From Scyliorhinus canicula (taxonomy: Eukaryota), in contig NC_052149.1 in NCBI RefSeq assembly GCF_902713615.1, forward strand, positions 126,793,256 through 126,857,255: DNA of 64,000 nucleotides, read 5' to 3'. The notes under the pieces are model-generated. The model did not search any database, was not told the origin of the DNA, and saw nothing but the letters and a program-made list of their open reading frames with translations. Below, in pieces: positions 22,126 through 52,222 of this stretch (its first letter is position 1; each line of letters starts with the position of its first letter). The position numbers and the translations under genes are program-made.

Positions 22126-22399
22126 TGCCGCCTTACCCACCTCCCTACCCTTCTCATTTACCTCACTCATGTCCCCACCCTCCTCACTTACCTCACTCAC
22201 GTCCCCACTTGCACGCCCTCACACACCCATTGACTCAGACATTCGAACACACTGAGCAGCTTTGTGATCTTTAAACTTACCAGAATACGGCAGCTATCGG
22301 TGTAAAAAGGGCAGGTGGTGGCTCTGTGGTATTATCACTGGGCCAGTAATCCAGAGAGCCCAGGCTAATGTTCCCACTGGCAGGACCCACCAGAGGCAC

Positions 22400-24570: not shown

Positions 24571-24789
24571 CCTCACCTTTATCTTTTCAGTGGTGGCAGC
24601 AACGGCAGGGTAAATTGCCGATTGTACGGGGATAGACAGCCGCGGTCTGAGATGATGGCACATTTCAGAAAGTGCGTGAGTATGTCCTGGAGGGTATTTT
24701 CAAATTGGATTAAATTGTCAGTCATTTTTTAAGCAAGGGAAGGGACCTGTTTGATTTATTTAATTTTTTAATTAAATTTTAAATTTAAA

Positions 24790-26560
24790 TAGTTTAGTCA
24801 TGACAGGCAAACTCAAAGATGTGTTATGTTCCTCCTGTTCTATGTGGGAAGCCAGGTACATTCCAGTGCCCGGGACCAGCATTTGTGCAGAAAGGCTGTC
24901 CAGCTATAGCTTCCGGAAGCTCGGATTTCATATCTGGAATGGTGGCTGGAGATAGTGTGGAGCATCCTTGAGGCTGAGAGCATCATGGGTAGCACGCTCA
25001 GAGAGATGGTCACACCGCAGCTGAAGGGTCTTGAAGATGGAAGGGAAAGGGTAGCACCAAGCTGTCTATGATAAACAGGCAGGTAGTTCAGGAGTTCCCT
25101 GGAAGCTGATGAAGGTACTGCTTCCTCCAGTGAGTGAGTGAGTGCAGACAGAGCCAAAAATATGGCACCACAGGAGCCTGTATGTACAGGAGGGGAGGAA
25201 GAGATGAAGAGCAATAATAATAGGGGAACCCATATCAGGGGAAAAGATAGGCATGACTGTGGCCATCAACCACTGTGACTCCTGAATGGTGAGTTGTCTC
25301 CCTGGTACCAGGGACTTGGATGTTGCTGCACGGCTGCAGGGAATCCTGAATGGGGGAGAGATAAGGCAGAGGTCATGGTCCATCTTGGTCCCAATGATAT
25401 CAGTAGAAAGAGGGATGAGGTCTTACATCAAGAATTCAGGAAGCAAGGCAATAGAATAAAAAGCAGGACCTCTCGGGTTGGGCAGTATGGTAGCACAGTG
25501 GGTAGCACTGTGTGCCTCACAGCTCCAGGGTCCCAGGTTCGATTCCTGGCTTGGGTCACTGTTTGTGTGGAGTCTGCACGTTCCCCCTGTGTCTGAATGA
25601 GCTTCGTCCGGATGCTCCGGTTTCCTCCCACAAGTCCCGTTAGATGTGCTGTTAGGCAATTTGGACATTCTGAATTCTCCCTCAGTGTACCCAAACAGGC
25701 ACCAGAGTGTGGCAACTAGGGGATTTTCACAGTAACTTCATTGCAGTGTTAATGTAAGCCTACTTGTGACAATAAAGATTATTATTATTATTATTATTGT
25801 AAACTCTGGATTACTCCCAGTGCCAGGTGCTAGTGAGCACAGAAATAGGAGAATAATGCAGATTAACGTGTGGCTTAAGAGCTGGTGCAGGAGGGAGGGG
25901 TGTAAATTCCTAGATCACTGGGACCATTTGTGGGGAAAGTGGGACCTGTGCAAGCAGGACAGTCGACATCTCAACCACAGAGGGACTAACATCCTTGTGG
26001 ATGGGTTTGCTTGTGCTGTTGGGAGGAGTTTAAAATAATTTGGCAAGGAGAGGGGATCACAGAATGTTAGCACAATAGGGACGCAGCATTATTCAGTAAA
26101 GCAATCGTGTCAGAGGCTATAGAACTTCATTGAATTTCAAGGGAGAAGGTAAGACTGGATGGCATCTACTTTATTGCCAGGAGTATTACAGGTGAAGCAG
26201 ATGAGTTAAGGGGGAGGATTGTCACGTGGGGCTGGATTCTCCGCCCCGTTGCACCACATTTCTGTTTCACCCCACTGGCGGGATGCTCCGTTACGCCAGC
26301 TAAACAATGGGGTTTCCCATTGTGGGCAGCCCCACACCGTTGGGAAACCTCCGGGCTGCCGGCAAAACGAAGCATCCGCCGGCGTAGAATCCAGCCCGTG
26401 GAATTGTGATATAGTTGCCATCACGGAGATGTGGTTGAGGGAGGGGCAGGATTGGCAGCTGATATAAAATCTTCAGGCGAGACAGGGGTGGGGGTAAATG
26501 AGGAGGAGGCATTGCATTATTAGTTAAGCAGTCAGTTACTGCAGGAAGGACAGATGTTGG
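24790..26560 (+). mobile_element. Decayed 5' part of a CR1 LINE (ORF1 SGNH/GDSL esterase-like region and start of ORF2), with a nested SINE and MITE
   Basis: VMVHLGPNDISRK-SGLLPVP-INVWLKSWCRREGCKFLDHW-HLNHRGTNIL, then DIVAITEMWLREGQDWQL. SINE at ~25480-25780. Confidence 0.7.
26229..26397. mobile_element. 169-bp MITE, PIF/Harbinger-like
   Basis: TIRs GGGCTGGATTCTCCGCC and GGCGTAGAATCCAGCCC. 3-bp TSD GTG at 26226-26228 and 26398-26400. Confidence 0.8.
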
Positions 26561-27701
26561 GCAGGTTTCTCTGTCGGCCAACACCAAAATCGCAAAATGC
26601 AATTTGGTGGGGAATGTGTTTTGACTCTGAAATTGTGGCGCGCGCCGGTTTCAAAATCGCAATTCTCCGGTGCCTCGACAGCAGCGTCATTGTGTTCCAT
26701 TCCTCACTTAGAGAAAATGGCATTGGCATATCAGCGTGCCTGACCCGGTATTCTCCAGGACTCCGCGATTCTCCGCCTCCATCGGGGGGAGTTCCCGACG
26801 GCGAGGTTCACTTGTGCTTTTAACAATCGTGAAACAGGCGCCGTGGCTGAAGAGGGAGAGAGAGGGGTTCGGACCCGGAGAGGCGCCACCTCTTCGATGC
26901 CGGTTATGATGCTGGGGGAGGGGGTGGGCTGCACGATTGTCCTCAATACCTGGGCCCTCTAAAGCTGCGTACCTAGCTCCCTACTATATTTCCTATACAC
27001 ACACGACTGCGTGGCAAAGTTTGGCTCCAACTCCATGTCCAGGTTTGCTGATGACACAACCATAGTGGGTCGGATCTTCAACAACGATGACTCAGAGTAG
27101 AAGAGGGAGATAGAGAACCTTGTGGAGTGGTGCAATGACAACAATCTCTCCCTCAAAGTCAGTGAAACTGAAGAGTTGGTCATTGACTTCAGGAAGCGCA
27201 GTGTCATACACACCCCTGTCTGCATCAATGGTGTAGAGGTGGAGATGGTGTCGAGGTGGAGATGGTTATCAGTTTCAAATTCCTAGGTGTGCACATCACC
27301 AATAAGCTGTCCTTGTCCACCAATGTCGACGTTGTGACCAAGAAAGCACAACAGTGCCTATACCTCCTCAGGAAACAAAGGAAATTTGGTATATATCCAC
27401 ATTAACTCTTCCCAATTTTTACAGAGGCACCATAGTAAGCATCCTATCTGGCAGCATCACAGCCTGGTGTGGCAACTGCTTGGCCCAACACCGTAAGAAT
27501 CTACAGAGTCATGAACACAGCCCAGTCCATCACACAATCCCTCGCCTCCCATCCATTGACTCTGTCTACGCCTCCCACTGCATTAGGAGAGCGGGCAGCA
27601 TAATCAAAGACCCCTCCCACCCAGCTTACTCACTCTTCCCACTTCTTCCATCGACCAGGAGATACAAAAGTCTGAGAACACGCACTAACAGGTTCAAAAA
27701 C

Positions 27702-27915
27702 CATGATGTGGAAATGCCGGCGTTGGACTGGGGTGAGCACAGTAAGAAGTCTTCCAACACCAGGTTAAAGTCCAACATGTTTGTTTCAAACACGAGCTTT
27801 CGGAGCACTGCTCCTTCCTCAAGTGAATCACCTGATGAAGGAGCAGTGCTCCGAAAGCTAGTGATTTGAAACAAACCTGTTGGACTTTAACCTGGTGTTG
27901 GAAGACTTCTTACTG
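27702..27915. mobile_element. Penelope-like-element terminal fragment forming a 176-bp hairpin (27740-27915)
   Basis: 11-bp TSD GGTTCAAAAAC at 27691-27701 and 27916-27926. The two arms are near-complementary and carry hammerhead cores. Confidence 0.75.
27826..27866 (+). ncRNA. Minimal type-I hammerhead ribozyme motif
   Basis: AATCAC-CTGATGA-A-GGAGC(AGT)GCTCC-GAA-AGCT-A-GTGATT. Stem I 6 bp, stem II 5 bp, core CUGAUGA/GAAA, palindromic stem III AGCU, UA cleavage site after 27860. Confidence 0.75.
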
Positions 27916-28169
27916 GGTTCAAAAACAGCTTCTTCCCCGCAGTTACCCGACTCCTGAATGACCCTCTTATGGACTGATCTGATCTCTTCACATATCTTCT
28001 CTAATGAGTAGTACTACACTCCTGTATGCTTCATCCAATGCCGGTAGCTATGTATTTACATTGTTTTTTTTCATGAATGGAATGATTTGTCTGGACTATG
28101 CGCAGAACAATACGTTTCACTGTACCTCGGTACACGTGACAATAAAACAAATCCAAACCCAAGGATGGA

Positions 28170-28690
28170 GTGCTGGCCACACAACAGGCCGAGGAGGAGG
28201 AGGAGGAGGAGGAGGTGCAAAGGAGGTGCCACATGAGGCCTCATGTGTACCGGCAGCGCCTGACATTCGAGGACCTGCCGGACCGGGCATGCTGTCGAAG
28301 TCTCCGGCTGATCAGGGGATGTGCGGAATTTCTGCCAGATCATGATGCTCCAGGCACCATCAATAGGAGAGGACACCGTCAAGGTGACGGTCGCCCTGAA
28401 CCTTTACGCCATGGGGTCCATAGTCATAGTCTGGGATCTCACAGAGCTCGGTGCAAAGGTACATCCGCGTTGTCACGGAGGCCCTATATCCCCAGAAGCC
28501 ACAATATATACATTTCAATGTGGCCCGTGCCCACCACGATACAACGCCGGGATACCCCGGGTCAAGGAGAGATCAACGGGGTGCATGTCCTCCTGCGAAC
28601 ATTTGCAGATGACAGGCCGCTCTACACAAACCGTAAGGAGTTCCACTCGATGACCATGCAGCTGGTGTGTAACCATCAGCTGAGCATCAG
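28170..28690 (+). pseudogene. PIF/Harbinger (HARBI1-like, DDE_Tnp_4) transposase, N-terminal part
   Basis: PHVYRQRLTFEDLPDRAC-LRL, VKVTVALNLYAMGS, PGQGEINGVHV (GxIDGxH with D>N), NRKEFHSMTMQLVCNHQLSIRH. Frameshifted. Confidence 0.85.
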
Positions 28691-31600
28691 ACACAACTGT
28701 GCCCAATACCCGGGCAGTGTGCACAACGTCTTCATCATACACAACTGTGCCCAATACCCGGGCAGTGTGCACAACGTCTTCATCATAAACAACTGTGCCC
28801 AATACCCGGGCAGTGTGCACAACGTCTTCATCATAAACAACTGTGCCCAATACCCGGGCAGTGTGCACAACGTCTTCATCATAAACAACTGTGCCCAATA
28901 CCCGGGCAGTGTGCACAACGCCTTCATCATAAACAACTGTGCCCAATACCCGGGCAGTGTGCACAACTCCTTCATCATACACAACTGTGCCCAATACCCG
29001 GGCAGTGTGCACAACGTCTTCATCATACACAACTGTGCCCAATACCCGGGGAGTGTGCACAACGTCTTCATCATACACAGCTGTGCCCAATACCTGGGCA
29101 GTGTGCACAACGTCTTCATCATACACAACTGTGCCCAATACCCGGGCAGTGTGCACAACATCTTCATCATACACAACTGTGCCCAATACCCGGTCAGTGT
29201 GCAACAAAGTCTTCATAATACAAAACTGTGCCCAATGCCCGGGCAGTGTGCACAGCCCCTTCATCATAAACAACTGTGCCCAATACCCGGGCAGTGTGCA
29301 CAACGTCTTCATCATAAACAACTGTGCCCAATACCCGGGCAGTGTGCACAACGTCTTCATCATACACAACTGAGCCCAATACCCGGGCAGTGTGCACAAC
29401 ACCTTCATCATACACAACTGTGCCCAATACCCGGGCAGTGTGCACAACGTCTTCATCATACACAACTGTGCCCAATACCCGGGCAGTGTGCACAACGTCT
29501 TCATCATACACAACTGTGCCCAATACCCGGGCAGTGTGCACAAAGTCTTCATCATACACAACTGTGCCCAATACCCGGGCAGTGTGTACAGCCCCTTCTT
29601 CATAAACAACTGTGCCCAATACCCGGGCAGTGTGCACAACGTCTTCATCATAAACAACTGTGCCCAATACCCGGGCAGTGTGCACAACGTCTTCATCATA
29701 CACAACTGAGCCCAATACCCGGGCAGTGTGCACAACACCTTCATCATACACAACTGTGCCCAATACCCGGGCAGTGTGCACAACGTCTTCATCATACACA
29801 ACTGTGCCCAATACCCGGGCAGTGTGCACGTCTTCATCTTACACAACTGTGCCCAATACCCGGGCAGTGTGCACAAAGCCTTCATCATAGACAACTGTGC
29901 CCAATACCCGGGCAGTGTGCACAACGTCTTCATCATACACAACTGTGCCCAATACCCGGGCAGTGTGCACAAAGCCTTCATCATAAACAACTGTGAACAA
30001 TACCCAGGCAGTGCACACAACACCTTCATCAGACACAACTGTGCCCAATACCCTGGCAGTGTGCACAAAGCCTTCATCATAAACAACTGTGCCCAATACC
30101 CGGGCAGTGTACACAACACCTTCATCATAAACAACTGTGCCCAATACCCGGGCAGTGTGCACAACATCTTCATCATACACAACTGTGCCCAATACCTGGG
30201 CAGTGTGCACAAAGCCTTCATCATACACAACTGTGCCCAATACCCGGGCAGTGTGCACAAAGCCTTCATCATAAACAACTGTGCCCAATACCCGGGCAGT
30301 GTGCACAACGTCTTCATCATACACAACTGTGCCCAATACCCGGGCAGTGTGCACAACGTCTTCATCATAAACAACTGTGCCCAATACCCGGGCAGTGTGC
30401 ACAACGTCTTCATCATACACAACTGTGCCCAATACCCGTGCAGTGTGCACAACGTCTTCATCATAAACAACTGTGCCCAATACCCGGGCAGTGTGCACAA
30501 TGCCTTCATCATACACAACTGTGCCCAATACCCGGGCAATGTGAAGAACGTCTTCATCATAAACAACTGTGCCCAATACCCAGGCAGTGTGCACAACGTC
30601 TTCATCATACACAACTGTGCCCAATACCCGGGCAGTGTGCACAACATCTTCATCATATACAACTGTGCCCAATACCCGGGCAGTGTGCACAACGTCTTCA
30701 TCATAAACAACTGTGCCCAATACCCGGGCAGTGTGCAAAAAGCCTTCATCATAAACAACTGTGCCAAATTCCCGGGCAGTGTGCACAACGTCTTCATCAT
30801 ACACAACTTTGCCCAATACCCGGGCAGTGTGCACAAAGCCTTCATCATAAACAACTGCGCCCAATACCTGGGCAGTGTGCACAACGTCACATCATACACA
30901 ACTGTGCCCAATACCCGGGCAGTGTGCACAACGTCTTCATCAATAACAACTGTGCCCAATACCCGGGCAGTGTGCACAAAGCCTTCATCATAAACAACTG
31001 AGCCCAATACCCGGGCAGTGTGCACAACGTGATCATCATAAACAACTGTGCCCAATACCCGGGCAGTGTGCACAACGTCTTCATCATAAACAACTGTGCC
31101 CAATACCCGGGCAGTGTGCACAACGCCTTCATCATAAACAACTGTGCCCAATACCCGGGCAGTGTGCACAACTCCTTCATCGTACACAACTGTGCCCAAT
31201 ACCCGGGCAGTGTGCACAACGTCTTCATTATAAACAACTGTGCCCAATACCCGGGCAGTGTGCACAACGTCTTCATCATAAACAACTGTGCCCAATACCC
31301 GGGCAGTGTGCACAATGTCTTCATCAGACACAACTATGCCCAATACCCGGGCAGTGTGCACAATGCCTTCATCATAAACAACTGTGCCCAGTACCCGGGC
31401 AGTGTGCACAACGCCTTCATCATAAACAACTGTGCCCAATATCCGGGCAGTGTGCACAACGTCTTCATCATAAACAACTGTGCCCAATACCCGGGCAGTG
31501 TGCACAACTCCTTCATCATACACAACTGTGCCCAATACCCGGGCAGTGTGCACAAAGCCTTCATCATAAACAACTGTGCCCAATACCCGGGCAGTGTGCA

Positions 31601-34600
31601 CAACGCCTTCATCATACACAACTGTGCCCAATACCCGGGCAGTCTGCACAACGTCTTCATCATACACAACTGTGCCCAATACCCGGGCAGTGTGCACAAC
31701 GTCTTCATCATAAACAACTGTGCCAAATACCCGGGCAGTGTGCACAACGCCGTCATCATACACAACTGTGCCCAATTCCCGGGCAGTGTGCACAATGTCT
31801 TCATCACACACAACTGTGCCCAATACCCGGGCAATGTGTACAACGTCTTCATCATACACAACTGTGCCCAATACCCAGGCAGTGTGCACAACGTCTTCAT
31901 CATACACAACTGTGCCCAATACCCGGGCAGTGTGCACAACGTCTTCATCATACACAACTGTGCCCAATACCCGGGCAGTGTGCACGTCTTCATCTTACAC
32001 AACTGTGCCCAATACCCGGGCAGTGTGCACAAAGCCTTCATCATAGACAACTGTGCCCAATACCCGGGCAGTGTGCACAACGTCTTCATCATACACAACT
32101 GTGCCCAATACCCGGGCAGTGTGCACAAAGCCTTCATCATAAACAACTGTGAACAATACCCAGGCAGTGCACACAACACCTTCATCAGACACAACTGTGC
32201 CCAATACCCTGGCAGTGTGCACAAAGCCTTCATCATAAACAACTGTGCCCAATACCCGGGCAGTGTACACAACACCTTCATCATAAACAACTGTGCCCAA
32301 TACCCGGGCAGTGTGCACAACGTCTTCATCATACACAACTGTGCCCAATACCTGGGCAGTGTGCACAAAGCCTTCATCATACACAACTGTGCCCAATACC
32401 CGGGCAGTGTGCACAAAGCCTTCATCATAAACAACTGTGCCCAATACCCGGGCAGTGTGCACAACGTCTTCATCATACACAACTGTGCCCAATACCCGGG
32501 CAGTGTGCACAACGTCTTCATCATAAACAACTGTGCCCAATACCCGGGCAGTGTGCACAACGTCTTCATCATACACAACTGTGCCCAATACCCGTGCAGT
32601 GTGCACAACGTCTTCATCATAAACAACTGTGCCCAATACCCGGGCAGTGTGCACAATGCCTTCATCATACACAACTGTGCCCAATACCCGGGCAATGTGA
32701 AGAACGTCTTCATCATAAACAACTGTGCCCAATACCCAGGCAGTGTGCACAACGTCTTCATCATACACAACTGTGCCCAATACCCGGGCAGTGTGCACAA
32801 CATCTTCATCATATACAACTGTGCCCAATACCCGGGCAGTGTGCACAACGTCTTCATCATAAACAACTGTGCCCAATACCCGGGCAGTGTGCACAACGCC
32901 TTCATCATAAACAACTGTGCCCAATACCCGGGCAGTGTGCACAACGCCTTCATCATAAACAACTGTGCCCAATACCCGGGCAGTGTGCAAAAAGCCTTCA
33001 TCATAAACAACTGTGCCCAATTCCCGGGCAGTGTGCACAACGTCTTCATCATACACAACTTTGCCCAATACCCGGGCAGTGTGCACAAAGCCTTCATCAT
33101 AAACAACTGCGCCCAATACCTGGGCAGTGTGCACAACGTCACATCATACACAACTGTGCCCAATACCCGGGCAGTGTGCACAACGTCTTCATCAATAACA
33201 ACTGTGCCCAATACCCGGGCAGTGTGCACAAAGCCTTCATCATAAACAACTGAGCCCAATACCCGGGCAGTGTGCACAACGTGATCATCATAAACAACTG
33301 TGCCCAATACCCGGGCAGTGTGCACAACGTCTTCATCATAAACAACTGTGCCCAATACCCGGGCAGTGTGCACAACGCCTTCATCATAAACAACTGTGCC
33401 CAATACCCGGGCAGTGTGCACAACTCCTTCATTGTACACAACTGTGCCCAATACCCGGGCAGTGTGCACAACGTCTTCATTATAAACAACTGTGCCCAAT
33501 ACCCGGGCAGTGTGCACAACGTCTTCATCATAAACAACTGTGCCCAATACCCGGGCAGTGTGCACAATGTCTTCATCAGACACAACTATGCCCAATACCC
33601 GGGCAGTGTGCACAATGCCTTCATCATAAACAACTGTGCCCAGTACCCGGGCAGTGTGCACAACGCCTTCATCATAAACAACTGTGCCCAATATCCGGGC
33701 AGTGTGCACAACGTCTTCATCATAAACAACTGTGCCCAATACCCGGGCAGTGTGCACAACTCCTTCATCATACACAACTGTGCCCAATACCCGGGCAGTG
33801 TGCACAAAGCCTTCATCATAAACAACTGTGCCCAATACCCGGGCAGTGTGCACAACGCCTTCATCATACACAACTGTGCCCAATACCCGGGCAGTCTGCA
33901 CAACGTCTTCATCATACACAACTGTGCCCAATACCCGGGCAGTGTGCACAACGTCTTCATCATAAACAACTGTGCCAAATACCCGGGCAGTGTGCACAAC
34001 GCCGTCATCATACACAACTGTGCCCAATTCCCGGGCAGTGTGCACAATGTCTTCATCACACACAACTGTGCCCAATACCCGGGCAATGTGTACAACGTCT
34101 TCATCATACACAACTGTGCCCAATACCCAGGCAGTGTGCACAACGTCTTCATCATACACAACTGTGCCCAATACCCGGGCAGTGTGCACAACGTCTTCAT
34201 CAGAAACAACTGTGCCCAATACCCGGGCAGTGTGCACAACGTCTTCATCATAAACAACTGTGCCCAATACACGGGCAGTGTGCACAACGTCTTCATCATT
34301 AACAACTGTGCCCAATACCCGGGCAGTGTGCACAACGTCTTCATCAGACAACACTGTGCCCAATACCCGGGCAGTGTGCACAACGTCTTCATCATACACA
34401 ACTGTGCCCAATACCCGGGCAGTGTGCACAACGTCTTCATCATAAACAACTGTGCCCAATACCCGGGCAGTGTGCACAACGTCTTCATCATAAACAACTG
34501 TGCCCAATACCCGGGCAGTGTGCACAACGTCTTCATCATAAACAACTGTGCCCAATACCCGGGCAGTGTGCACAACGCCTTCATCATAAACAACTGTGCC

Positions 34601-36854
34601 CAATACCCGGGCAGTGTGCACAACTCCTTCATCATACACAACTGTGCCCAATACCCGGGCAGTGTGCACAACGTCTTCATCATACACAACTGTGCCCAAT
34701 ACCCGGGCAGTGTGCACAACGTCTTCATCATACACAGCTGTGCCCAATACCTGGGCAGTGTGCACAACGTCTTCATCATACACAACTGTGCCCAATACCC
34801 GGGCAGTGTGCACAACGTCTTCAACATACACAACTGTGCCCAATACCCGGGCAGTGTGCACAAAGTCTTCATCATACACAACTGTGCCCAATGCCCGGGC
34901 AGTGTGCACAGCCCCTTCATCATAAACAACTGTGCCCAATACCCGGGCAGTGTGCACAACGTCTTCATCATAAACAACTGTGCCCAATACCCGGGCAGTG
35001 TGCACAACGTCTTCATCATACACAACTGAGCCCAATACCCGGGCAGTGTGCACAACACCTTCATGATACACAACTGTGCCCAATACCCGGGCAGTGTGCA
35101 CAACGTCTTCATCATACACAACTGTGCCCAATACCCGGGCAGTGTGCACAACGTCTTCATCATACACAACTCTGCCCAATACCCGGGCAGTGTGCACAAA
35201 GTCTTCATCATACACAACTGTGCCCAATACTCGGACAGTGTGCACAGCCCCTTCTTCATAAACAACTGTGCCCAATACCCGGGCAGTGTGCACAACGTCT
35301 TCATCATAAACAACTGTGCCCAATACCCAGGCAGTGTGCACAACGTCTTCATCATACACAACTGAGCCCAATACCCGGGCAGTGTGCACAACACCTTCAT
35401 CATACACAACTGTGCCCAATACCCGGGCAGTGTGCACAACGTCTTCATCATACACAACTGTGCCCAATACCCGGGCAGTGTGAACGTCTTCATCTTACAC
35501 AACTGTGCCCAATACCCAGGCAGTGTGCACAAAGCCTTCATCATACACAACTGTGCCCAATACCCGGGCAGTGTGCACAACGTCTTCATCATACACAACT
35601 GTGCCGAATACCCGGGCAGTGTGCACAAAGCCTTCATCATAAACAACTGTGAACAATACCCAGGCAGTGTACACAGCCCCTTCTTCATAAACAACTGTGC
35701 CCAATACCCGGGCAGTGTGCACAACGTCTTCATCATAAACAACTGTGCCCAATACCCGGGCAGTGTGCACAACGTCTTCATCATACACAACTGAGCCCAA
35801 TACCCGGGCAGTGTGCACAACACCTTCATCATACACAACTGTGCCCAATACCCGGGCAGTGTGCACAACGTCTTCATCATACACAACTGTGCCCAATACC
35901 CGAGCAGTGTGCACGTCTTCATCTTACACAACTGTGCCCAATACCCGGGCAGTGTGCACAAAGCCTTCATCATACACAACTGTGCCCAATACCCGGGCAG
36001 TGTGCACAACGTCTTCATCATACACAACTGTGCCCAATACCCGGGCAGTGTGCACAAAGCCTTCATCATACACAACTGTGCCCAATACCCGGGCAGTGTG
36101 CACAAAGCATTCATCGTAAACAACTGTGCCCAATACCCGGGCAGTGTGCACAAAGCCTTCATCATACACAACTGTGCCCAATACCCGGGCAGTGTGCACA
36201 AAGCCTTCATCATAAACAACTGTGCCCAATACCCGGGCAGTGTGCACAACGTCTTCATCATACACAACTGTGCCCAATACCCGGGCAGTGTGCATAACGT
36301 CTTCATCATAAACAACTGTGCCCAATACCCGGGCAGTGTGCACAACGTCTTCATCATACACAACTGTGCCCAATACCCGTGCAGTGTGCACAACGTCTTC
36401 ATCATAAACAACTGTGCCCAATACCCGGGCAGTGTGCACAATGCCTTCATCATACACAACTGTGCCCAATACCCGGGCAATGTGAAGAACGTCTTCATCA
36501 TAAACAACTGTGCCCAATACCCAGGCAGTGTGCACAACGTCTTCATCATACACAACTGTGCCCAATACCCGGGCAGTGTGCACAACATCTTCATCATAGA
36601 CAACTGTGCCCAATACCCGGGCAGTGTGCACAACGTCTTCATCATAAACAACTGTGCCCAATACCCGGGCAGTGTGCACAACGTCTTCATCATTAACAAC
36701 TGTGCCCAATACCCGGGCAGTGTGCACAACGTCTTCATCAGACAACACTGTGCCCAATACCCGGGCAGTGTGCACAACGTCTTCATCATAAACAACTGTG
36801 CCCAATACCCGGGCAGTGTGCACAAAGCCTTCATCATACACAACTGTGCCCAAT
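28691..36854 (+). repeat. 48-bp satellite derived from Harbinger transposase (unit encodes HNCAQYPGSVHNVFII), part 1, ~170 units
   Basis: ACACAACTGT recurs at 28691 and 28739. The first units are in frame with the transposase. Confidence 0.97.
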
Positions 36855-39709
36855 GGCCACTATGATTTAGTGGCCCTTACTGAAACATGGTTAAAGGATG
36901 GTCACGACTGGGAGTTAAATATCCGAGGGTATCAAACTATTCGGAAGGGCAGAGTGGATGGTAAGGGAGGTGGTGTTGCTCTGTTAGTTAAGGATGACAT
37001 CCGGGCAATAGTAAGGGATGACATCGGTGCTATGGAGGATAAGGTTGAATCCATTTGGGTGGAAATCAGGAATAGTAAGGCGAAAAAGTCACTGATAGGA
37101 GTAGTCTATCGGCCACCAAATAGTAACGAGATGGTGAGGCAGGCAATAAACAAAGAAATAACTGATGCATGTAGAAATGGTACAGCAGTTATCATGGGGG
37201 ATTTTAATCTACATGTCGATTGGTTTAACCAGGTCGGTCAAGGCAACCGTGAGGAGGAGTTTATAGAATGTATCCGCGATAGTTTCCTAGAACAGTATGT
37301 AATGGAACCTACGAGGGAACAAGCGGTCCTAAATCTTGTCCTGTGTAATGAGACAGGATTGATTCATGATTTCATAGTTAGGGATCCTCTCGGAAGGAGC
37401 GATCACAATATGGTGGAATTTAAAATACAGATGGAGGGTGAGAAAGTAAAATCAAATACTAGTGTTTTGTGTTTAAACAAAGGAGATTACAAGGGGATGA
37501 GAGAAGAACTAGCTAAGGTAGACTGGGAGCTAAGACTTTATGGTGGAACAGTTGAGGAACAGTGGAGAACCTTCCAAGCGATTTTTCACAAAGGTTTATA
37601 CCAGCAAAGGTTTATACCAACAAAAAGGAAGGACGGAAGAAAGAGGGAAAATCGACCGTGGATATCTAAGGAAATAAGGGAGAGTATCAAATTGAAGGAA
37701 AAAGCATATAAAGTGGCAAAGATTGCTGGGAGATTAGAGGACTGGGAAATGTTTAGGGGGCAACAGAAAGCTACTAAAAAAAGCTATAAAGAAGATTAAG
37801 ATAGAGTATGAGAGTAAACTTGCTCAGAATATAAAAACAGACAGTAAAAGTTTTTACAAATATATAAGACAAAAAAGAGTGGCTAAGGTAAATATTGGTC
37901 CTTTAGAGGATGAGAAGGGAGTTTTAATAATGGGAAATGAGGAAATGGCTGAGGAACTGAACAGGTTTTTTGGGTCGGTCTTCACAGTGGAAGACACAAA
38001 TAACATGCCAGCGACTGATAGAAATGAGGCTATGACAGGTGAGGACCTTGAGAGGATTGTTATCACTAAGGAGGGAGTGATGGGCAAGCTAATGGGGCTA
38101 AAGGTAGACAAGTCTCCTGGCCCTGATGGAATGCATCCCAGAGTGCTAAAAGAGATGGCTAGGGAAATTGCAGATGCACTAGTGATAATTTACCGAAATT
38201 CACTAGACTCTGGGGTGGTCCCGGTGGATTGGAAATTAGCAAACGTGACGCCACTGTTTAAAAAAGGAGGTAGGCAGAAAGCAGGAAATTATAGGCCAGT
38301 GAGTTTAACTTCGGTAATAGGGAAGATGCTGGAATCTATCATCAAGGAAGAAATTGCGAGGCATCTGGATAGAAATTGCCCCATTGGGCAGACGCAGCAT
38401 GGGTTCGTTAAAGGCAGGTCATGCCTAACTAATTTAGTGGAATTTTTTGAGGACATTACCAATGCAGTAGATAACGGGGAGCCGATGGATGTGGTATATC
38501 TGGATTTCCAGAAAGCCTTTGACAAGGTGCCACACAAAAGGTTGCTGCATAAGATAAAGATGCATGGCATTAAGGGTAAAGTAGTAGCATGGATAGAGGA
38601 TTGGTTAATTAATAGAAAGCAAAGAGTTGGGATAAATGGGTGTTTCTCTGGTTGGCAATCAGTAGCTAGTGGTGTCCCTCAGGGATCCATGTTGGGCCCA
38701 CAATTGTTCACAATTTACATTGACGATTTGGAGTTGGGGACCAAGGGCAATGTGTCCAAGTTTGCAGATGACACTAAGATGAGTGGTAAAGCGAAAAGTG
38801 CAGAGGATACTGGAAGTCTGCAGAGGGATTTGGATAGGTTAAGTGAATGGGCTCGGGTCTGGCAGATGGAATACAATGTTGACAAATGTGAGGTTATCCA
38901 TTTTGGTAGGAATAACAGCAAACGGGATTATTATTTAAGCGATAAAATATTAAAGCATGCCGCTGTTCAGAGAGACTTGGGTGTGCTAGTGCATGAGTCA
39001 CAGAAGGTTGGTTTACAAGTGCAACAGGTGATTAAGAAGGCAAATGGAATTTTGTCCTTCATTGCTAGAGGGATGGAGTTTAAGACTAGGGAGGTTATGT
39101 TGCAATTGTAAGGTGTTAGTGCGGCCACACCTGGAGTATTGTGTTCAGTTTTGGTCTCCTTACTTGAGAAAGGACGTACTGGCGCTGGAGGGTGTGCAGA
39201 GGAGATTCACTAGGTTAATCCCAGAGCTGAAGGGGTTGGATTATGAGGAGAGGTTGAGTAGACTGGGACTGTACTCGTTGGAATTTAGAAGGATGAGGGG
39301 GGATCTTATAGAAACATTTAAAATTATGAAGGGAATAGATAGGATAGATGCGGGCAGGTTGTTTCCACTGGCGGGTGACAGCAGAACTAGGGGGCATAGC
39401 CTCAAAATAAGGGGAAGTAGATTTAGGACTGAGTTTAGGAGGAACTTCTTCACCCAAAGGGTTGTGAATCTATGGAATTCCTTGCCCAGTGAAGCAGTTG
39501 AGGCTCCTTCATTACATGTTTTTAAGGTAAAGATAGATAGTTTTTTGAAGAATAAAGGGATTAAGGTTTATGGTGTTCGGGGCGGAAAGTGGAGCTGAGT
39601 CCACAAAAGATCAGCCATGATCTAATTGAATGACGGAGCAGGCTCGAGGGGCCAGATGGCCTACTCCTGCTCCTAGTTCTTATGTTCTTATGTTCTTATG
39701 TTCTTATGT
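36855..39709 (+). mobile_element. 5'-truncated CR1 LINE inserted in the 48-bp array
   Basis: DLVALTETW-GVVYRPP-MGDFN-DHN, then KSPGPDG-GVPQGSMLGP-FADD. (TTCTTATG)n tail. AAT duplicated at 36852-36854 and 39710-39712. Confidence 0.95.
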
Positions 39710-41027
39710 AATACCCGGGCAGTGTGCACAATGCCTTCATCATAAACAACTGTGCCCAATACCCGGGCAGTGTGCACAACGCCTTCATCATAAACAACTG
39801 TGCCCAATACCGGGGCAGTGTGCACAACGTCTTCATCATAAACAACTGTGCCCAATACCCGGGCAGTGTGCACAAAGCCTTCATCATACACAACTGTGCC
39901 CAATACCCGGGCAGTGTGCACAAAGCCTTCATCATAAACAACTGTGCCCAATACCCGGGCAGTCTGCACAACGTCTTCATCATACACAACTGTGCCCAAT
40001 ACCCGGGCAGTGTGCACAACGTCTTCATCATAAACAACTGTGCCCAATACCCGGGCAGTGTGCACAACGCCGTCATCATACACAACTGTGCCCAATACCC
40101 GGGCAGTGTGCACAACGTCTTCATCATACACAACTGTGCCCAATACCCGGGCAGTGTGCACAACGTCTTCATCATAAACAACTGTGCCCAATACCCGGGC
40201 AGTGTGCACAAAGCCTTCATCATACACAACTGTGCCCAATACCCGGGCAGTGTGCACAAAGCCTTCATCATAAACAACTGTGCCCAATACCCGGGCAGTG
40301 TGCACAAAGCCTTCATCATACACAACTGTGCCCAATACCCGGGCAGTGTGCACAAAGCCTTCTTCATAAACAACTGTGCCCAATACTCGGGCAGTGTGCA
40401 CAACGTCTTCATCATACACAACTGTGCCCAATACCCGGGCAGTGTGCACAACGTCTTCATCATAAACAACTGTGCCCAATACCCGGGCAGTGTGCACAAC
40501 GTCTTCATCATACACAACTGTGCCCAATACCCGTGCAGTGTGCACAACGTCTTCATCATAAACAACTGTGCCCAATACCCGGGCAGTGTGCACAATGCCT
40601 TCATCATACACAACTGTGCCCAATACCCGGGCAATGTGTACAACGTCTTCATCATACACAACTGTGCCCAATACCCAGGCAGTGTGCACAACATCTTCAT
40701 CATACACAACTGTGTCCAATACCCGGGCAGTGTGCACAACATCTTCATCATACACAACTGTGCCCAATACCCGGGCAGTGTGCACAACGTCTTCACCATA
40801 AACAACTGTGCCCAATACCCGGGCAGTGTGCAAAAAGCCTTCATCATAAACAACTGTGCCCAATTCCTGGGCAGTGTGCACAACGTCTTCATCATACACA
40901 ACTTTGCCCAATACCCGGGCAGTGTGTACAAAGCCTTCATCATTAGCAACTGTGCCCAATACCCGGGCAGTGTGCACAACGTCTTCATCATACACAACTG
41001 TGCCCAATACCCGGGCAGTGTGCACAT
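39710..41027 (+). repeat. 48-bp satellite, part 2 (~27 units)
   Basis: Same unit. Ends in ...PGSVH, then unique transposase sequence ISFIPAHSMIPDMFEM. Confidence 0.95.
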
Positions 41028-42427
41028 CTCATTCATCCCTGCACACTCGATGATTCCTGACATGTTCGAGATGCCCCCCCCCCCCCCCCCCCCCCCCCCC
41101 CAGCTGAGGGGTTTGTTGTGTTATACACCCTGGGGTAACACGGACTGCAACATGATGCAGATAAACGATAAAGCATACACCAAACATAGGCGTTGGTTCA
41201 ATAAGATTTATTGAACTTCAGTAACGAAGCACGCAGCTGCCTGGGGGTTGACTCTCTACTACTCGAAGTAAATTGACACTAACTATCTTGTCCAGGCTAG
41301 CTCTGATCCACGTGTAGAAGGTGTTGAATGATTTGTACACCATGTTATGAGAGCGGCGTTTTCAGAACCCCAAAATGTACCATGGAGTTCAACCAACCTC
41401 TCCCTTTAATGGATTGTTGCTTTTGAAGCACACGGCTTGGTCTCCAGGTGTGGGATTACAATTATGGACACGTGGGTTTTTAAACACAAAACAATGTTTA
41501 TTCCATGAATTCAACTTAACCTTTTAAATAAACATTGGCTCATTTACCACCCCTTCCTCCAAAAATAACCCCGAAAATAATACTACACTAAATAATCCCT
41601 CAAAATGGTCCTTCAAACCTCCAACCTCCAATAGACTGAACACCTTTAACAACAGAAACACATCAGGTTAAAGACATTACTATTATGAGTTTAAATCACC
41701 CAAATGATTCAGAGATAGTCTTTCATGGCAGAGATCACAGCAGATCCAGCTCACTGCAAACACAGACACACCCAAGCTCTTTTCCTCAAAACGGAAACCA
41801 AAACACTGCAAAATGGCTGAGCTAAAAACCCAGCTCCACCCACACTCTGACATCACTTCAGTAATATGAGCTGCTCCATTTCTTAAAGTTACATTACTTA
41901 GACATCCATTTCTTAAAGGTACTCTCACCTTGTTGTCACCAGTGGAAAGAGGCAGAGTGCTGATGCCTCGTGTGTTTTATAGTTGGAAGCCACCCTCTGG
42001 TGTTCTGTCTGCTGATTGGCTGTGTTCTGTTCTGTATGTTGATTGGCTCACCTTGGTGTCTGTCACTGCCTGCTTTGGCATCATGATATGCATGGGTGCA
42101 TATTATGACAGGGTTTGCTCCTGGGTGATAGGGGTTATCCACTGCGGCTGTGGCTGATGACGTGGAGACCCTCTACAACAATGCCCATGTAGGACTAGGG
42201 GTGTGACCGAGCGGTGCTTCGGCCTCCTGAAGATGTGGTTCAGGTGCCTGGACCACTCTGGATGGGCCCTTCAGTATGGTCCCGAGAGGGTCGCCCGCAT
42301 TATGGTGGCCGGCTGTACCCTCCACAACATCACGCAGCAGAGGGGCAACGTGCTGGCAGAAGAGGATGAACATCCAGCCTCCTCTGATGAGGAGGATGTA
42401 GGGGAGGGCGAGTCAGGCAGGGCATAG
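41028..42427 (+). pseudogene. Harbinger transposase C-terminal part, interrupted by LTR sequence at 41114-42110
   Basis: After removing the insert: LRGLLLGDRGYPL-WLMT. Then ERCFGLLKMWFRCLDHSG-LQYGPERVARI-CTLHNI, carrying the LGDxGY Asp and the E of the DDE triad. Confidence 0.88.
41114..42110 (-). mobile_element. Solo LTR with a second LTR-like segment nested at ~41343-41927
   Basis: Outer TG...CA with 5-bp TSD GGGTT at 41109-41113 and 42111-42115. Inner segment starts TGTTATGA and its TSD is unresolved. Strand inferred from TTTATT motifs. Confidence 0.7.
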
Positions 42428-45010
42428 GGCCCGGGCAGGCACTGGAGGCCCTACAATGTGTGCACAAGGGCCAATGTACATGGGACGCTCTGATCACCTC
42501 CAGATTCACCGACTGACGGTGTCTGACCAAGGGCACAGACACCACAATGCCCCCCACACACCCCGGCCCGCCTACCTGGCCACTCGCCCGCCCACAACCT
42601 CCTCTATGATACATTCCTGCCGCACTACGGGATGCAGACCCTGGTTGGCAGTAACAGCGGGTCTGGTCTATGGGACGGAGGATGATGACAGCCCACTCAG
42701 CAATGAGCTCTGGTGCTCCGCATCGTTTGACAATGTCTGACTCCTGCCACAGTAGCACTTTCCACCTGGGTGATCCCTGCCTGCGAGCTGACCAATCCAT
42801 TGAATCATTGATGTGCCGGACTTCCGGTGGTGGCTATGAGGGAGTAAGTCGCACATTTGGTAGCTCGCGCTCCGGTCTGACTTTAAGACCTTTTCCCCCG
42901 ATTTTTTTGAACTTTTGAGCGCTGGAGTGAAAAGCAATAGCACTCTAGATCTGAATCCATACAGAGTTGTCTGGACTTAAGGAGCAGAAGGGAGCGAAAA
43001 CAGGCGAAGAAGGGGCTGAACAAAGGTGGTGTGGAAGCTCTAGTGGGAGGAAAGATGGCCGATGAACGGACCACGGAACGGACGGTCCAGGCAGCACCGG
43101 ACAACATGCTGAAGGTCATGAAAGAGAGCTTCGCAGCACTGAAGCGGGATAATTTGGAACCGCTCCAGAAAGTGGTGGAGCGACTTGACCAGATGCTGGA
43201 TGCTCAGGATAAGAAGGTCCAGGCACTGGAGAAGACAGTGGAAGAGCAGGCGGATTTCCAAACGGTAGCGGACGTGGAAATTAGAAAGTTGAAGGAGCAG
43301 CAAGCAAGGCTGATGGACAAGCTGGAGGACCTGGAAAACAGGTCTCGCCGGCAGAATCTGAGAATCATTGGGCTCCCGGAGGGGGCCGAGGGAGTGGATG
43401 CCACGGTATATGTGGCAGACATGCTGCAGAAGCTGGTGGGGGATGATTTCTTCCCGCGTCTGTTGGAGCTGGGCAGGGCACACAGAGTGCAGGTGAGGCA
43501 TCCACGGGCGGTGGGGGGGGCCGGGCGATGGTGGTCAGATTCCATAGGTTCATGGACAAGGAGCGGGTTCTACAGTGGGCCAAGAGCATGAGGAGCTGCT
43601 CATGGAACAACAGTGTCCTGCGCATCTACCAGGATCTGAGCCAGGAGGTGGCCAGAAGGAGGGCAGCCTACAGACAAATTAAAGGGATTCTATTTAAAAA
43701 GAAGGTCAAGTTTGGGCTACTTTTCCCGACGCAGCTTTGGGTCACATACAAGCCGAACAGCAACATTATTTTGACAACCCGGAGGAAGTGATGGACTTTG
43801 CTAAGGGGCATGGACTGATGCCGAACTGAGGACCCATGGACTCAGGTTAGGGTGTACTGAGGGATGTCTGCAGTTGTTCATAGCCCTTTGTATTAGCGAT
43901 GTCGTGTTCTTCTGTTTGTGTTTGCCTGTTTGAAAGTTTTAAAGTTAAAGCCAAAGTTATAGTTAAAGTTTAAGTTATTGGTAGCTGGGGGGCTGTTTGG
44001 GTTCTTTTTGCTTTTTTTCTGGGAATGTTGGGAGGGGGTAGGTGGCAGCGCCCACCTCATTACACAGTTTGAATTGCACTATTGTGGGAACGAGCTTTGT
44101 TCTTTGTTTGTTTTCTCTCTGTTTTGGTCCCAGAGCGATTGCTCGAACAGGGCTGTTCTGGGGAGGTGGTGTGGATGGGTGGGGGGGAGGGGAGCGGGGG
44201 GACAATAGGTGGGAGACATGGTGGCGCCGGAGTTGAGAGCCACCAGGCTAGCTGCTTTGAGCTAGTCAACGGGAGCGAGGTGGGGGGGGGGTGTATACAG
44301 CCAGTATAGGACAGGGGTTAGGTGACAAGGGGTTGTTGCTGGGGGGGGGGGGGGGGGGAGGCGGGGGGGGGGGGGGGGGGGGTGGGGGGAAGATGATCTG
44401 CTGATGAGGGAGGCAACTGAACCAGGTAACAAGGAAGGGGTCGGGTGTGGAAGCTGCCAAGAGGCGGACCAGGGGAGACGCGGCACATGGGCAGGGGGTG
44501 GGCCCAAGAAAGGGGGATGGCAGGCGTTGGGCGGGGGGGGGAGGGGCAGGGTGCCCTCCAACCAGGCTGATCACCTGGAATGCTAGAGGATTAAACGGGC
44601 CGGTCAAGAGGACATGTGTGTTCGCGCACTTACGGGCTCTGAAGGCGGATGTAATGTTACTGCAGGGGACACATTTGAAAGTGGCGGACCAGATTAGATT
44701 ACGGAAGGTCTGGGTTAGCCAGGTTTTCCATTCGGGGCTTGACGCTAAGACCAGAGGGGTCGCGATCATGATTAAGAAACGGGTTAAGCTTGAGGCGAAC
44801 AGCACAGTTGCAGATGGGGGGAGGGGTAGATTTCCCATGGTCTGGGGCAAGCTTGAGGGGGTGAAGGTGGTCCGAGTGAATGTTTACGCTCCAAATTGGG
44901 ATGATGTAGATTTCATCAAAAGGCTGCTGGGGAAAATCCCCGACTTGGATTTGCACAAGTTGATTATGGGTGGGGACTTTAATACAGTCCTCAACCCCGA
45001 CCTGGACCGG

Positions 45011-45291
45011 TGATGTACCATCAATTGGACGAGAGACACGATGAATGTCAAAACTTAGGCTTTAATCAGCTAGATGTTAGCCCGGTGGCCATCTACAGAG
45101 AAAGGCCGACCGCCGGGAACTCTGGGTACTTATACCCCGCCTCGGAGGCGGGGTCTACTTGCCTCTCGACCAATTGGTGAGCAGTCACATGACTAGTCTC
45201 AGCCAATCAGCCGAGAGGCACATGACCAGCCAGAGCCAATGGGAAACCAGTGCTCTGCACCAATGGCAGTGCTCCCACTCATACAACCACA
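45011..45291 (-). mobile_element. Solo LTR nested in the L1 endonuclease domain
   Basis: TG...CA ends. 5-bp TSD ACCGG at 45006-45010 and 45292-45296. Related to the LTR at 9770. Confidence 0.92.
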
Positions 45292-48194
45292 ACCGGTCAT
45301 GCTCCAGAACGGGCAGGGTCCCGGCAATGGCAAGAGAACTGACAGGGTTCATGGAACAAATGGGGGGGGGGGGGTGGACCCCTGGAAAATCAGCCGGCCG
45401 ACGGGGAAGGAGTTCTCGTTCTATTCACATGTTCACAAGGTTTATTCTCGTATTGACTTCTTTATTATGAGTAGGGACTTTTTGGAGGGGGTGAGGGATA
45501 CTGAATACTTGGCGATCACTATTTCAGGCCATGCTCCACATTGGGTCGACCTGCTGGTCTGCAAAGAAAATTACCAGCGCCCACAATAGATGTTAGAGGT
45601 GGGATTGTTGGCAGAGAGGGTGTGTGAGCGAGTGGGGAAATGCATGCAGGACTACCTGCAGGTCAACGATACAGGGGAAGTCTCAGCAGCGGTGCTCTGG
45701 GAGGCACTGAAGGCCGTGGTGAGAGGGGAACTGATCTCAATCTGAGCCCATAGGGACAGAACGGATAGGGCGGAGATGGACAGACTGGTGCAGGAGATGA
45801 CACGGACGGATAGGGAATATGCGGAATCCCCGAGGGCAGAGCTACTTAGGGAATGACGGAGACTGCAGGCGGAGCTGGGAGCGCTATCCACTGGGAAGGC
45901 CGTAGAGCAACTCAGAAAGGCCAGGGGCGCGGTGTATGAGTACGGGGAGTAAGCCAGCAGAATGCTTGCACAGCAACTTAGGAAGAGGGAGGCGGCCAGG
46001 CAGATAGGGACGGTAGTGGACAGGGCAGGGAACCGGGTGGGAGACCCGGCAGGACTGAACAGGGTATTCAGGGACTTTTACAGTAAGCTGTGTACCTCGG
46101 AACCCCCCACGGGGCCGGAGGGGATGAGGCGCTTCTTAGATGGGCTGACCTTCCCAAAGGTGGGCAGGGGGATGGTAGAGGGGCTGGGGGCCTCGATTAG
46201 AGCTGAAGAAGTAATGGGGAGCCTGAAGGCCATGCAGTCGGGTAAAACCCCGGGGCCGGATGGGTATCCAGTGGAGTTCTACAAAACGTTCTCGGGTATA
46301 CTGGGGCCAGTGCTGGTTAGGGTGTTTAACGAGGCGAGGGACAATGGGATATTGCCCCCGACGATGTCGCAAACCACCACCTCGCTGATATTAAAACGGG
46401 ATAAGGATCCGCAGGTTTGTGGGTCCCATAGGCCAATCTCCCTGATTAATGTAGACGCTAAACTGCTGGCCAAGATCCTGGCATCCAGAATTGAGGACTG
46501 CGTACCGGACGTGATTGTGGAGGACCAAACGGGGTTTGTTAAGGGCAGGCAGCTAGTAGCCAATCTAAGAAGGCTACTCAATGTGATTATGATGCCCCCG
46601 GAGGGCAGAGAGGTGGAGGTAGTGGTGGCAATGGATGCCAAAAAGGCTTTTGACTGGGTGGAATGGGACTATTTATGGGAGGTGTTGGGACAGTTTGGGT
46701 TTGGAGAAGGCTTTGTGGATTGGGTTAAACTGCTATATGAGGCCCCGGAGGCTAGTGTAAGGACGAACAGGACGACATCTGAGTATTTTAGGCTACACCG
46801 CGGGACAAGACAGGGATGCCCCATCTCTCCACTGCTGTTTGCGTTGGCCATAGAACCGCTGGCAATTGCTCTGAGAGCGGCAAGGGGATAGAAGGGAATG
46901 GTCGGGGGGGGGGGTGGGGGGGGGGATAGAACACAAGGTCTCGCTCTGCGCGGATGACCTGCTTTTTGTATGTGTCAGATCCAGCGGCAGGGATGGACGG
47001 GATTATGGAAATCCTAGGGGAGTTTGGCTGGTTTTCGGGCTACAAGTTGAACATGGCAAAAAGCGAGATGTTTGTGGTGCAGGCGAGGGGTCAGGAGAAT
47101 AGGCTGAGTGAGCTACCATTTAGGCTGGTTGGGGAAAGTTTTAGGTATCTAGGGATACAAGTGGCGCGCGACTGGGGTACGATGCATAGGATGAACTTGT
47201 CCAGGCTGGTGGAGCAAATGAGGAGCGAGTTTCGGAGGTGGGATGAACTCCCGAAGTCACTAGCGGAGAGAGTACAGACGGTGAAGATGACGATCCTCCC
47301 GAGATTCCTGTTTATTTTTCAGTGTCTCCCTATTTTCATTCTTTAAAAGAATCAATAAAATCATCCTGGGATTTATTTGGGCGGGGAAGTCCCCGCGGGT
47401 AAAGAGGGGAATGCTGGAACGGAACCGTAGCGAGGGGGGGCTGGCGCTGCCGAACCTCAGCAACTACTACTGGGCGGCTAACATAGCCATGATAAGGAAA
47501 TGGATGGTGGGTATGGGGTCTGTTTGGGAGCGGGTGGAGGCTGCTTCATGCAGGGGCACCAGCTTGGCAGCCCTGGTCACGGCTCCCCTACTGTTCCCGC
47601 CGCCAGGTACTCCACCAGCCCTGTAGTGGTGGCTTTGCGGATTTGGGGCCAGTGGAGGAAGTGTGCGGGGGAAGTGGGAGCGTCGGTCTGGTCCCCAATA
47701 TGTGACAACCATCGATTTGTCCCGGGGAAGATGGATGGCGGGTTTCGAGCGTGGCAGAGGGCAGGGGTGGGAAGGATGGGCGACGTGTTCCTGGAAGGGA
47801 GCTTCGCAAACATGAGGGCGCTGGAGGAGAAGTTCGGGCTGGCGAGGGGGAATGACTTTCGGTACTTGCAGGTGCGGGATTTCGTACGTAGACAGGTCCC
47901 GTCCTTTCCACGCCTTCCACCAAGGGGGATCCAGGACAGGGTAATTTCCAGGGGTGAGGTAGGAGAGGGGAGAGTCTCAGATATTTATAAGGAGCTAATG
48001 GGAACGGAGGACACAGGAGCCGAGAAACTGAAACTTAAGTGGGAGGAGGAGCTTGGTGGGGAGTTGGAGGGAGGCGTATGGGCAGACGCTCTGAGGAGGG
48101 TAAATGCAACTGTAACAGTTCAAGGTAGTTCACCGGGCCCACATGACGGTGGCCCGGATGAGCAAATTCTTTGGGCTGGAGGACAAGTGTGCTA

Positions 48195-48545
48195 GATATC
48201 ATAGATTTTACAGTGCAGAAGGAGGCCACTCGGCCCAACGAGTCTGCACCGGCTCTTGGAAAGAGCACCCTACCCAAGGTCAACACCTCCAATTTATCCC
48301 CATAACCCAGTGACCCCACCCAACACTAAGGGCAATTTTGGACACAATGGGCAATTTATCATGGCCACTCCATCTAACCTGCACATCTTTGGACTGTGGG
48401 AGGAAACCGGAGCACCCGGAGGAAACCCACGCACACACGGGGAGGATGTGCAGACTCCACACAGTCAGTGACCCAAGCTGCAATCGAACCTGGGACCCTG
48501 GAGCTGTGAAGCAATTGTGCTATCCACAATGCTACCGTGCTGCGC
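48195..48545 (-). mobile_element. HE1/V-SINE-like tRNA-derived SINE nested in L1
   Basis: tRNA-like head, central domain GTGGGTTTCCTCCGGGTGCTCCGGTTTCCTCCCACA, CR1-type 3' end. Similar copies at ~49598-49915 (+) and ~51405-51650 (-). Confidence 0.8.
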
Positions 48546-51160: not shown

Positions 51161-51770
51161 GCAGAAATGTTGTGGTGATCGGAGAGCCAGAGACAGATAG
51201 TTGGGATTTTGAAAGTGCCGTTGGAAGTGAATTGGGGAATAGGTTTTTCCAGGGATGGATACAAAAGGGGGTAGGGTTGGGGTGTGGAAGGGGGATGTGG
51301 GTGGGGAGTGATATAAGGAAGTGATCAGTGATGGTCTTATCTGTGATTGAAACACTGGGAGTAGTGATACCACGTGAGGAGGTAAGGTCATATACAATTC
51401 ATAAACTTCATAGAATTCATAGAATTTACAGTGCAGAAGGAGGCCATTCAGCCCATCGAGTCCGCACCGGCCCTTGGAAAGAGCACCCCACCCAAGCCCA
51501 TGCCTCTACCCTATCCTCGTAACCCAGTAACCCCACCTAAACATTTTGGACACTGAGGGCAATTTAGCATGACCAATCTACCTAACCTGCACAACTTTGG
51601 ACTGTGGGGGAACTGGAGCACCCAAAGAAAACCCACACAGACACAGGGAGAATATGGGAGAAGGGGGAGGTGGGGAATATGGGTTGGAGAATTGTGATTG
51701 TGATGATTTAATCCCAGCAACTTTCAGTCTCTTTTCTGATTTGAATCTTGTAAACTCAGAGATTCCAGAT

Positions 51771-52037: not shown

Positions 52038-52222
52038 AATAAAACTGATCATTTAAAAATGATTGATAATTGTCTTTGAATCCAATCTTCTTCGAATGTG
52101 TCATTGATTGACAGGCCAACCAGCCAATCATGATAATCATTTGCTGAAATGCAGCCAATCAGCTGATGGGGAGGAGGGACATTCCAAACCACACACGAGA
52201 CACATACTGAATATTCTTTATG

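Follow-up and report, generated by a model that had tools for sequence, protein, structure and literature searches.

A 48-bp minisatellite probably grown from catalytic-core codons of an inactive PIF/Harbinger transposase gene in the catshark Scyliorhinus canicula

How does a piece of the coding sequence of a transposable element (TE) become the monomer of a long tandem array, and can the event still be traced at the place where the array now lies? Most satellites are too homogenised for their origin to be traced. The question is raised by a stretch of 64,000 nucleotides of Scyliorhinus canicula (RefSeq assembly GCF_902713615.1, contig NC_052149.1, positions 126,793,256 to 126,857,255 of the forward strand; hereafter the window, within which there are no N runs), in which a tandem array of 48-bp units lies between the two halves of a PIF/Harbinger transposase pseudogene. 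The best explanation of the array is that 48 bp of an already inactive copy of the transposase gene were duplicated in tandem and gave rise to a minisatellite that is neutral and non-coding; a probability of about 0.85 is assigned to this explanation. The duplicated stretch would correspond to the 16 codons around the PGSxHD catalytic motif. Here, what remains of the parental gene continues on either side of the array with codon precision, so that the initial duplication and the way in which the array grew can be read directly.

The array was delimited with Tandem Repeats Finder (TRF), and its units were then parsed by stepwise alignment. It contains ~198 units, 9,487 bp in total, in two parts: 28685-36854 (part A; 170.5 copies with 92% matches) and 39710-41026 (part B; 27.4 copies with 93% matches). 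The sizes of its unit and of the whole array are those of a minisatellite; for satellite DNA in the strict sense, an abundant multi-locus family with many long arrays or a high share of the genome would be expected. The stepwise parse yields 170 units, then one unit cut by an insert, and then 27 units. Thus, on the + strand, part A consists of 170 units of 48 bp and a 16-nt partial unit (28692-36854, from TRF, the unit parse and tblastn), and part B consists of the rest of the split unit and 27 further units (39710-41026, from TRF and a variant pool like that of part A). TRF places the start of the array at 28685 rather than 28692 because the flanking sequence CATCAGA resembles the unit end CATCATA. 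Seven small indels are present in part A, in the order +1, -3, -1, -3, -1, -3, -3 (unit parse). A 27-nt core of the unit has 194 matches at no more than 3 mismatches, all of them on the + strand and within the array, where 0 are expected by chance. In the frame of the flanking gene, the unit consensus translates to HNCAQYPGSVHNVFII, and the two most frequent units translate to HNCAQYPGSVHNVFII and NNCAQYPGSVHNVFII.

The sequences on either side of the array belong to one transposase gene. Both match the Pfam family DDE_Tnp_4 (PF13359, curated cut-off 24.8 bits): the 5' flank together with the first unit matches profile positions 12-63 (E 4.6e-8, 33.3 bits), and the 3' flank matches profile positions 115-158 (E 3.7e-6, 27.1 bits). 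In database searches, the closest proteins come from the catshark Scyliorhinus torazame, where they are predicted as "putative nuclease HARBI1"; the comparison with them was made at the protein level, and the gene pieces in the window are 51-70% identical to these HARBI1-like proteins. An exhaustive search of representative proteins gave a closest relative only ~52% identical, and the proteins found there with two matched stretches were rejected as counterparts, being whole-domain duplications and not unit arrays. When the full-length reference P0003 (XP_072327009.1, S. torazame, 420 aa) is mapped by tblastn, its residues 74-266, 249-280, 284-307 and 320-376 fall in order on the + strand at 28218-28739, 40987-41082, 42112-42177 and 42194-42364. 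A second comparison protein, P0001, gives a similar picture: its residues 72-130 match the 5' half (BLASTP, E 2e-18), its residues 113-150 map to 40987-41118 (tblastn), and its residues 184-237 match the 3' part (BLASTP, 70% identity, E 2e-24).

From these matches, the pseudogene can be laid out on the + strand as three pieces. The 5' half of the DDE_Tnp_4 gene, from the N-terminal region to ...LVCNHQLSIR, occupies 28165-28691 (Pfam, BLASTP, tblastn). Beyond the array, the transposase continues in frame at 41027-41113 with ISFIPAHSMIPDMFEM, followed by a poly-C run and then QLRG (translation, tblastn). The 3' part, from LLGDRGYPL to a stop codon at 42425-42427, spans 42111-42427 (Pfam, BLASTP, tblastn, three-frame translation). 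In translation, the 5' flank ends ...NRKEFHSMTMQLVCNHQLSIR and the 3' flank begins ISFIPAHSMIPDMFEM..., with LLGDRGYPL and ERCFGLLK later. The order of motifs expected of the family, GxxDGxH, NRKxxxS, PGSxHD, LGDxGY and ExxFGxLK, is thus present and colinear with that of intact members.

The monomer itself comes from the middle of this order. All units can be aligned, with no gap, to the segment of the relatives that carries the catalytic motif PGSVHD (...HVCAQYPGSVHDAFIL), and 189 high-scoring segment pairs (HSPs) of tblastn to P0001 residues 113-130 fall entirely inside the array, which is therefore a TE-derived tandem repeat in the plain sense of a head-to-tail monomer homologous to a segment of a TE. 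Both edges of the array pass into the gene without foreign sequence and without loss. Since the layout is a 5' half, n units and a 3' half, with nothing foreign and nothing missing, it points to tandem duplication within the gene copy; an array that had merely landed beside a gene would not be expected to have such edges. An earlier note on this stretch had claimed a 48-bp array inside a Harbinger gene with both halves kept, a unit of 16 codons over PGSxHD that is colinear with family members, and the motifs LLGDRGYPL and ERCFGLLK in the 3' flank. The TRF array, the colinear HSPs to P0001 and P0003, the gapless alignment of each unit to HVCAQYPGSVHDAFIL and the translated flank all agree with this, and in the test that the note had set for itself, a match of the reconstructed halves to DDE_Tnp_4, both flanks score above the PF13359 cut-off. 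As a correction to it, the array is not a single unbroken frame, given the seven indels in part A, and the 5' half of the gene itself has four frame changes.

What could have started the array is suggested by a short repeat at its edge. The tetramer CATC is present at 28685-28688 and again at unit positions 42-45 (in the last copy, 41034-41037), exactly 48 bp apart. In the founding step, the two CATC tetramers would have mispaired during strand slippage or taken part in an unequal exchange, and such an event would be expected to yield the junction CATC-ATA-CACAAC. The flank reads AGA, and the corresponding G at unit position 47 is kept in seven units; at the flank-AGA site, contigs of another species read ATG, as in the IMH of the relatives. 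That the period is in frame would then be a coincidence of where the CATC tetramers happen to lie, with a chance of 1 in 3.

By the time of this first step, the gene had probably already been inactivated. The first catalytic D is N (INGVH, where relatives have VDGVH). At the second, the catalytic-D codon begins at unit position 34, where all 189 full-length (48-bp) units have A; 0 of 197 units read GAC at this codon, the residue being N, K or S in the units, while the terminal copy has I. Because no unit encodes D, the founder unit had already lost the catalytic D. Thus, two of the three catalytic residues are gone. The reading frame is also broken, with four frame changes in the 5' half (+1, +2, +3, +2, +1) and, in the 3' half, two frame changes, a deletion of ~9 codons and a 28-nt poly-C run at 41074-41101 expanded from PP codons. 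With neither an intact D-D-E set nor an open frame, this Harbinger copy is dead. The S. torazame HARBI1-like proteins (XP_072327009.1 and its relatives) share its domain and order of motifs; unlike them, with their single PGSVHD segment and intact D, the copy in the window has ~198 such segments and has lost two catalytic residues.

The array grew mostly by unequal exchange of blocks of several units, not by slippage of single units. When each unit is written as a type, the resulting string reveals two near-identical blocks of ~2.2 kb (45-47 units each) in tandem on the + strand, at 29797-31952 and 31953-34156 (29797-34156 together). Units 24-43 correspond to units 69-88 and units 43-68 to units 90-115, each unit having 0-1 differences from its counterpart 45 or 47 units away; the blocks also share a -3 and a -1 indel at equal block positions. 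This pair reflects a recent duplication. Shorter motifs of unit types are also repeated at other places in the array, and adjacent units differ from one another as much as units drawn at random do (3.39 vs 3.39 differences).

Two insertions, both named in the earlier note and both recovered here, followed. The first is a 5'-truncated, CR1-like long interspersed nuclear element (LINE) at 36855-39709 (+ strand; PF03372, PF00078 and the junction sequences), which inserted within one unit. It encodes an AP endonuclease (PF03372, E 5e-12) and a reverse transcriptase (PF00078, E 1e-33), and its 3' end is a (GTTCTTAT)4 octamer tail with no poly-A; AAT is duplicated at the junctions. An octamer-repeat tail is typical of CR1, and by its domains and tail the insert can be assigned to the CR1 clade as CR1-like. 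The mean pairwise difference between units is 3.40 within part A, 3.40 within part B and 3.37 between A and B; because the variant pool is common to both, the two parts are one array split by the LINE. The second insertion has left a solo long terminal repeat (LTR) in the 3' half of the gene, 997 bp at 41114-42110 by direct reading, with the ends TGTTGTG...ATGACA (TG...CA). On its two sides lies a 5-bp target duplication, GGGTT (41109-41113 and 42111-42115). Removal of the LTR and one GGGTT restores an in-frame QLRGLLLGDRGYPL, which matches PRMRGWLLGDRGYPL of P0001.

An array of this kind might be kept for a function, and its length might be doubted. On the protein side, it could be read as the gene of a functional repeat protein, or as one exon in a domesticated HARBI1-like gene, given a period that is a multiple of 3 and long open reading frames (ORFs) of 608, 741 and 585 aa on the + strand. 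However, the ORFs on the minus strand are longer still (1,156, 1,377 and 1,085 aa), and the first units are free of stops in all three + frames; with long ORFs on both strands and three + frames without a stop, ORF length is uninformative. Against a protein stand 3 frame-breaking indels, an in-register TGA in 7 units, 37 stops in a fixed frame, the frameshifts in both flanking halves of the gene, and the lack of any match among 5.8 billion proteins for translations of the array (434 aa and 64 aa). Moreover, the distinct unit variants comprise 13 synonymous, 45 non-synonymous and 1 stop change, where 28, 112 and 4 single changes are possible; because this ratio matches that of the possible changes, there is no purifying selection on the protein frame. 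The CpG observed/expected ratio is 0.54, and the two CpG sites belong to the positions at which the units vary most. Indels, stops, neutral variants and frameshifted flanks effectively refute the repeat protein, for which we see hardly any chance at all, and they agree with the argument of the earlier note that the frameshifts and D>N changes speak against one.

A role in RNA is very improbable, if not quite to the same degree. In such a role, the array would be a source of small RNAs (PIWI-interacting or small interfering RNAs) that silence active Harbinger copies in trans, and would be kept for that purpose. The unit does match a conserved part of a Harbinger family present in many copies in these genomes, where conserved gene segments have depths in the thousands; that both strands of the unit are free of stops is neutral on this point. 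Yet the variation among units looks neutral, and no RNA run on record contains words of the array in an index of contigs, which is weak evidence; in the same contig index, the array words are next to absent from ~18 probable RNA runs of the same species. The array-derived RNAs whose existence the earlier note had raised were thus not found in that index. In addition, base-pairing to active copies is doubtful, because the unit is only ~51-72% identical, at the protein level, to the closest Harbinger proteins. At gathering thresholds, Rfam finds no RNA family, hammerhead included, anywhere in the window. The array is non-coding, and no function is indicated. There is also a slim chance that its length, in particular the pair of 2.2-kb blocks, is an artefact of assembly, since assemblies are classically prone to error where tandem blocks are nearly identical. 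However, independent runs and species confirm the tandem arrangement, and between the two blocks there are a two-unit insertion and a few substitutions, as would be expected of genuine paralogues.

A neutral minisatellite born from the gene that surrounds it could still have been born elsewhere, in a parent of this copy. The earlier note held that the birthplace of the satellite is preserved; what stands is that the native gene context is kept, whereas a first duplication at this locus rather than in a parent copy is supported only in part, since contigs of other species also carry the junction. These are Logan contigs of four DNA runs (organisms coded by letter), which were mapped to the 5' flank and three units, and their summed depth is a rough figure, not a copy number. 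Several points weigh against the proposed origin, or against its having taken place here. Contigs of organisms B and C cross the unit junction with no differences, organism E has a high summed depth on the units, and a 163-nt flank contig of organism A, with 4 differences, hints at a paralogous copy. With a length of only 4 bp, the CATC microhomology could be a coincidence, the first step being itself a reconstruction, and the absence of RNA, coming from a contig index, is a weak point in the argument.

The contigs would fit a history in which the locus is one of several copies: a Harbinger element with a short 48-bp duplication would have been multiplied, either through transposition of a non-autonomous derivative or through segmental duplication, and arrays would have expanded from it separately at several loci and in several shark species. 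This is a serious candidate, though we would not bet on it, and it is compatible with the explanation given above for the origin of the unit. Besides the junction-spanning contigs in B and C, the unit depth in E and the variant flank contig in A, it can draw on the ratio of unit depth to unique-flank depth in organism A, which suggests, roughly, 10^2 to 10^3 units and possibly more than 198, and on Chenopodium, where arrays are associated with the transposase domain tnp2 at many loci (PMC7320549). On the other side, summed contig depth is not copy number, no second Harbinger copy or array is present in the 64-kb window, and no terminal inverted repeats have been found. A broader and somewhat more doubtful proposal is that the catalytic-motif codons of shark Harbinger elements are a recurrent seed of arrays, so that several Harbinger copies in this genome, and others in related shark species, would each have an array derived from these codons or from codons close by. 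Such seeding could occur through mobilisation of an array-bearing derivative or through an intrinsic proneness of the sequence to slippage.

The family to which this gene belongs is itself common. Two segments of the Harbinger gene, 28372-28479 and 28588-28695, have summed depths in the thousands in three shark DNA runs, and many contigs join conserved Harbinger segments through internal deletions. Because of these depths and deletion-joined contigs, the family can be described as very abundant and rich in deletion derivatives. The marks of a whole PIF/Harbinger element would be terminal inverted repeats, accompanied by a TWA target duplication of 3 bp, and a second, Myb/SANT-like gene. A search for terminal inverted repeats pairing 22000-28170 with 42430-56000 found none, and because of this the mobility of the copy in the window cannot be argued. 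Among the flanking ORFs scanned with Pfam there is no Myb-domain partner gene, only LINE domains. Another repeat adjoins the start codon of the transposase, and nested inverted repeats of 57 nt and 39 nt are present just upstream of it, at 27702-27921.

Much of the surrounding window is repetitive as well. Tandem arrays of five unrelated units (36, 91, 16, 48 and 23 bp) make up ~39% of it. They include a 36-bp array x 194 at 1-7038, two 91-bp arrays at 7704-9147 and 12563-13538, a 16-bp array x 328 at 16854-22120 and a 23-bp array x 24 at 59215-59771. Because tandem arrays account for this share of the window, the region can be said to be one of general repeat expansion, in which the Harbinger pseudogene may just have happened to lie. 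Between the two 91-bp arrays lies a minus-strand LINE (9244-12570) with AP endonuclease and reverse transcriptase; it could equally have inserted into an older 91-bp array, as the CR1-like element did in the 48-bp array. An L1-like LINE on the + strand (42830-~48200) starts ~400 bp past the transposase stop. Its ORF1 (43031-43591) encodes a coiled coil. A poly-G tract (44341-44389) precedes the AP endonuclease, which runs from 44447, and the reverse transcriptase runs from 45962.

TEs are a recognised source of satellites, and published lists include cases derived from ORFs and one from a class II transposase (PMC9659126). The earlier note knew of no description of this satellite family. In the literature searched, no Harbinger-derived satellite and no satellite of this kind from a catshark or other shark was found, and to that extent the statement holds; a satellite seeded by a class II transposase has been published (PMC7320549), and the kind of process is thus already known. 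This is the closest precedent, the Chenopodium satellite CficCl-61-40, whose start monomer is a ~40-bp fragment of tnp2 from the CACTA element Jozin (Belyayev et al. 2020, PMC7320549). In both systems, a 40-48 bp fragment of a class II transposase domain is the monomer, and arrays are joined to the transposase. They differ in element and host, CACTA in a plant and PIF/Harbinger in a shark. In addition, CficCl-61-40 is the most abundant satellite family of Chenopodium, with deletion derivatives at many loci, whereas the catshark family is low-copy (of the order of 10^2 to 10^3 units, from rough depth) and has both halves of the gene exactly colinear.

More distant parallels are found among satellites from retrotransposon ORFs: PROsat (LINE-1 ORF2, Phodopus), HinfI/SCR1 (CR1 ORF2, chicken) and E3900 (gag, rye) (PMC9659126, Table 1). 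There, too, coding sequence of a TE became a tandem monomer. Unlike the catshark array, they come from class I elements, their monomers are mostly longer, and the parental gene is not kept on both sides. In Drosophila, the Tetris and DINE-TR1 arrays (PMC4079207) likewise show repeats that start inside a DNA transposon and grow satellite-like. However, these are non-coding internal repeats that spread with the element, whereas the catshark unit is coding sequence of the catalytic core.

With the catshark locus, PIF/Harbinger and a cartilaginous fish join the few known cases of TE coding sequence that has become a tandem repeat. Taken singly, the locus makes a good teaching example, unusually legible rather than surprising. 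It also has a practical side, in that such arrays yield long spurious ORFs on both strands and may mislead gene prediction. If the recurrent seeding considered above were true, shark Harbinger elements would parallel, in vertebrates, the CACTA tnp2 case of Chenopodium, in which transposons keep supplying new identical monomers.

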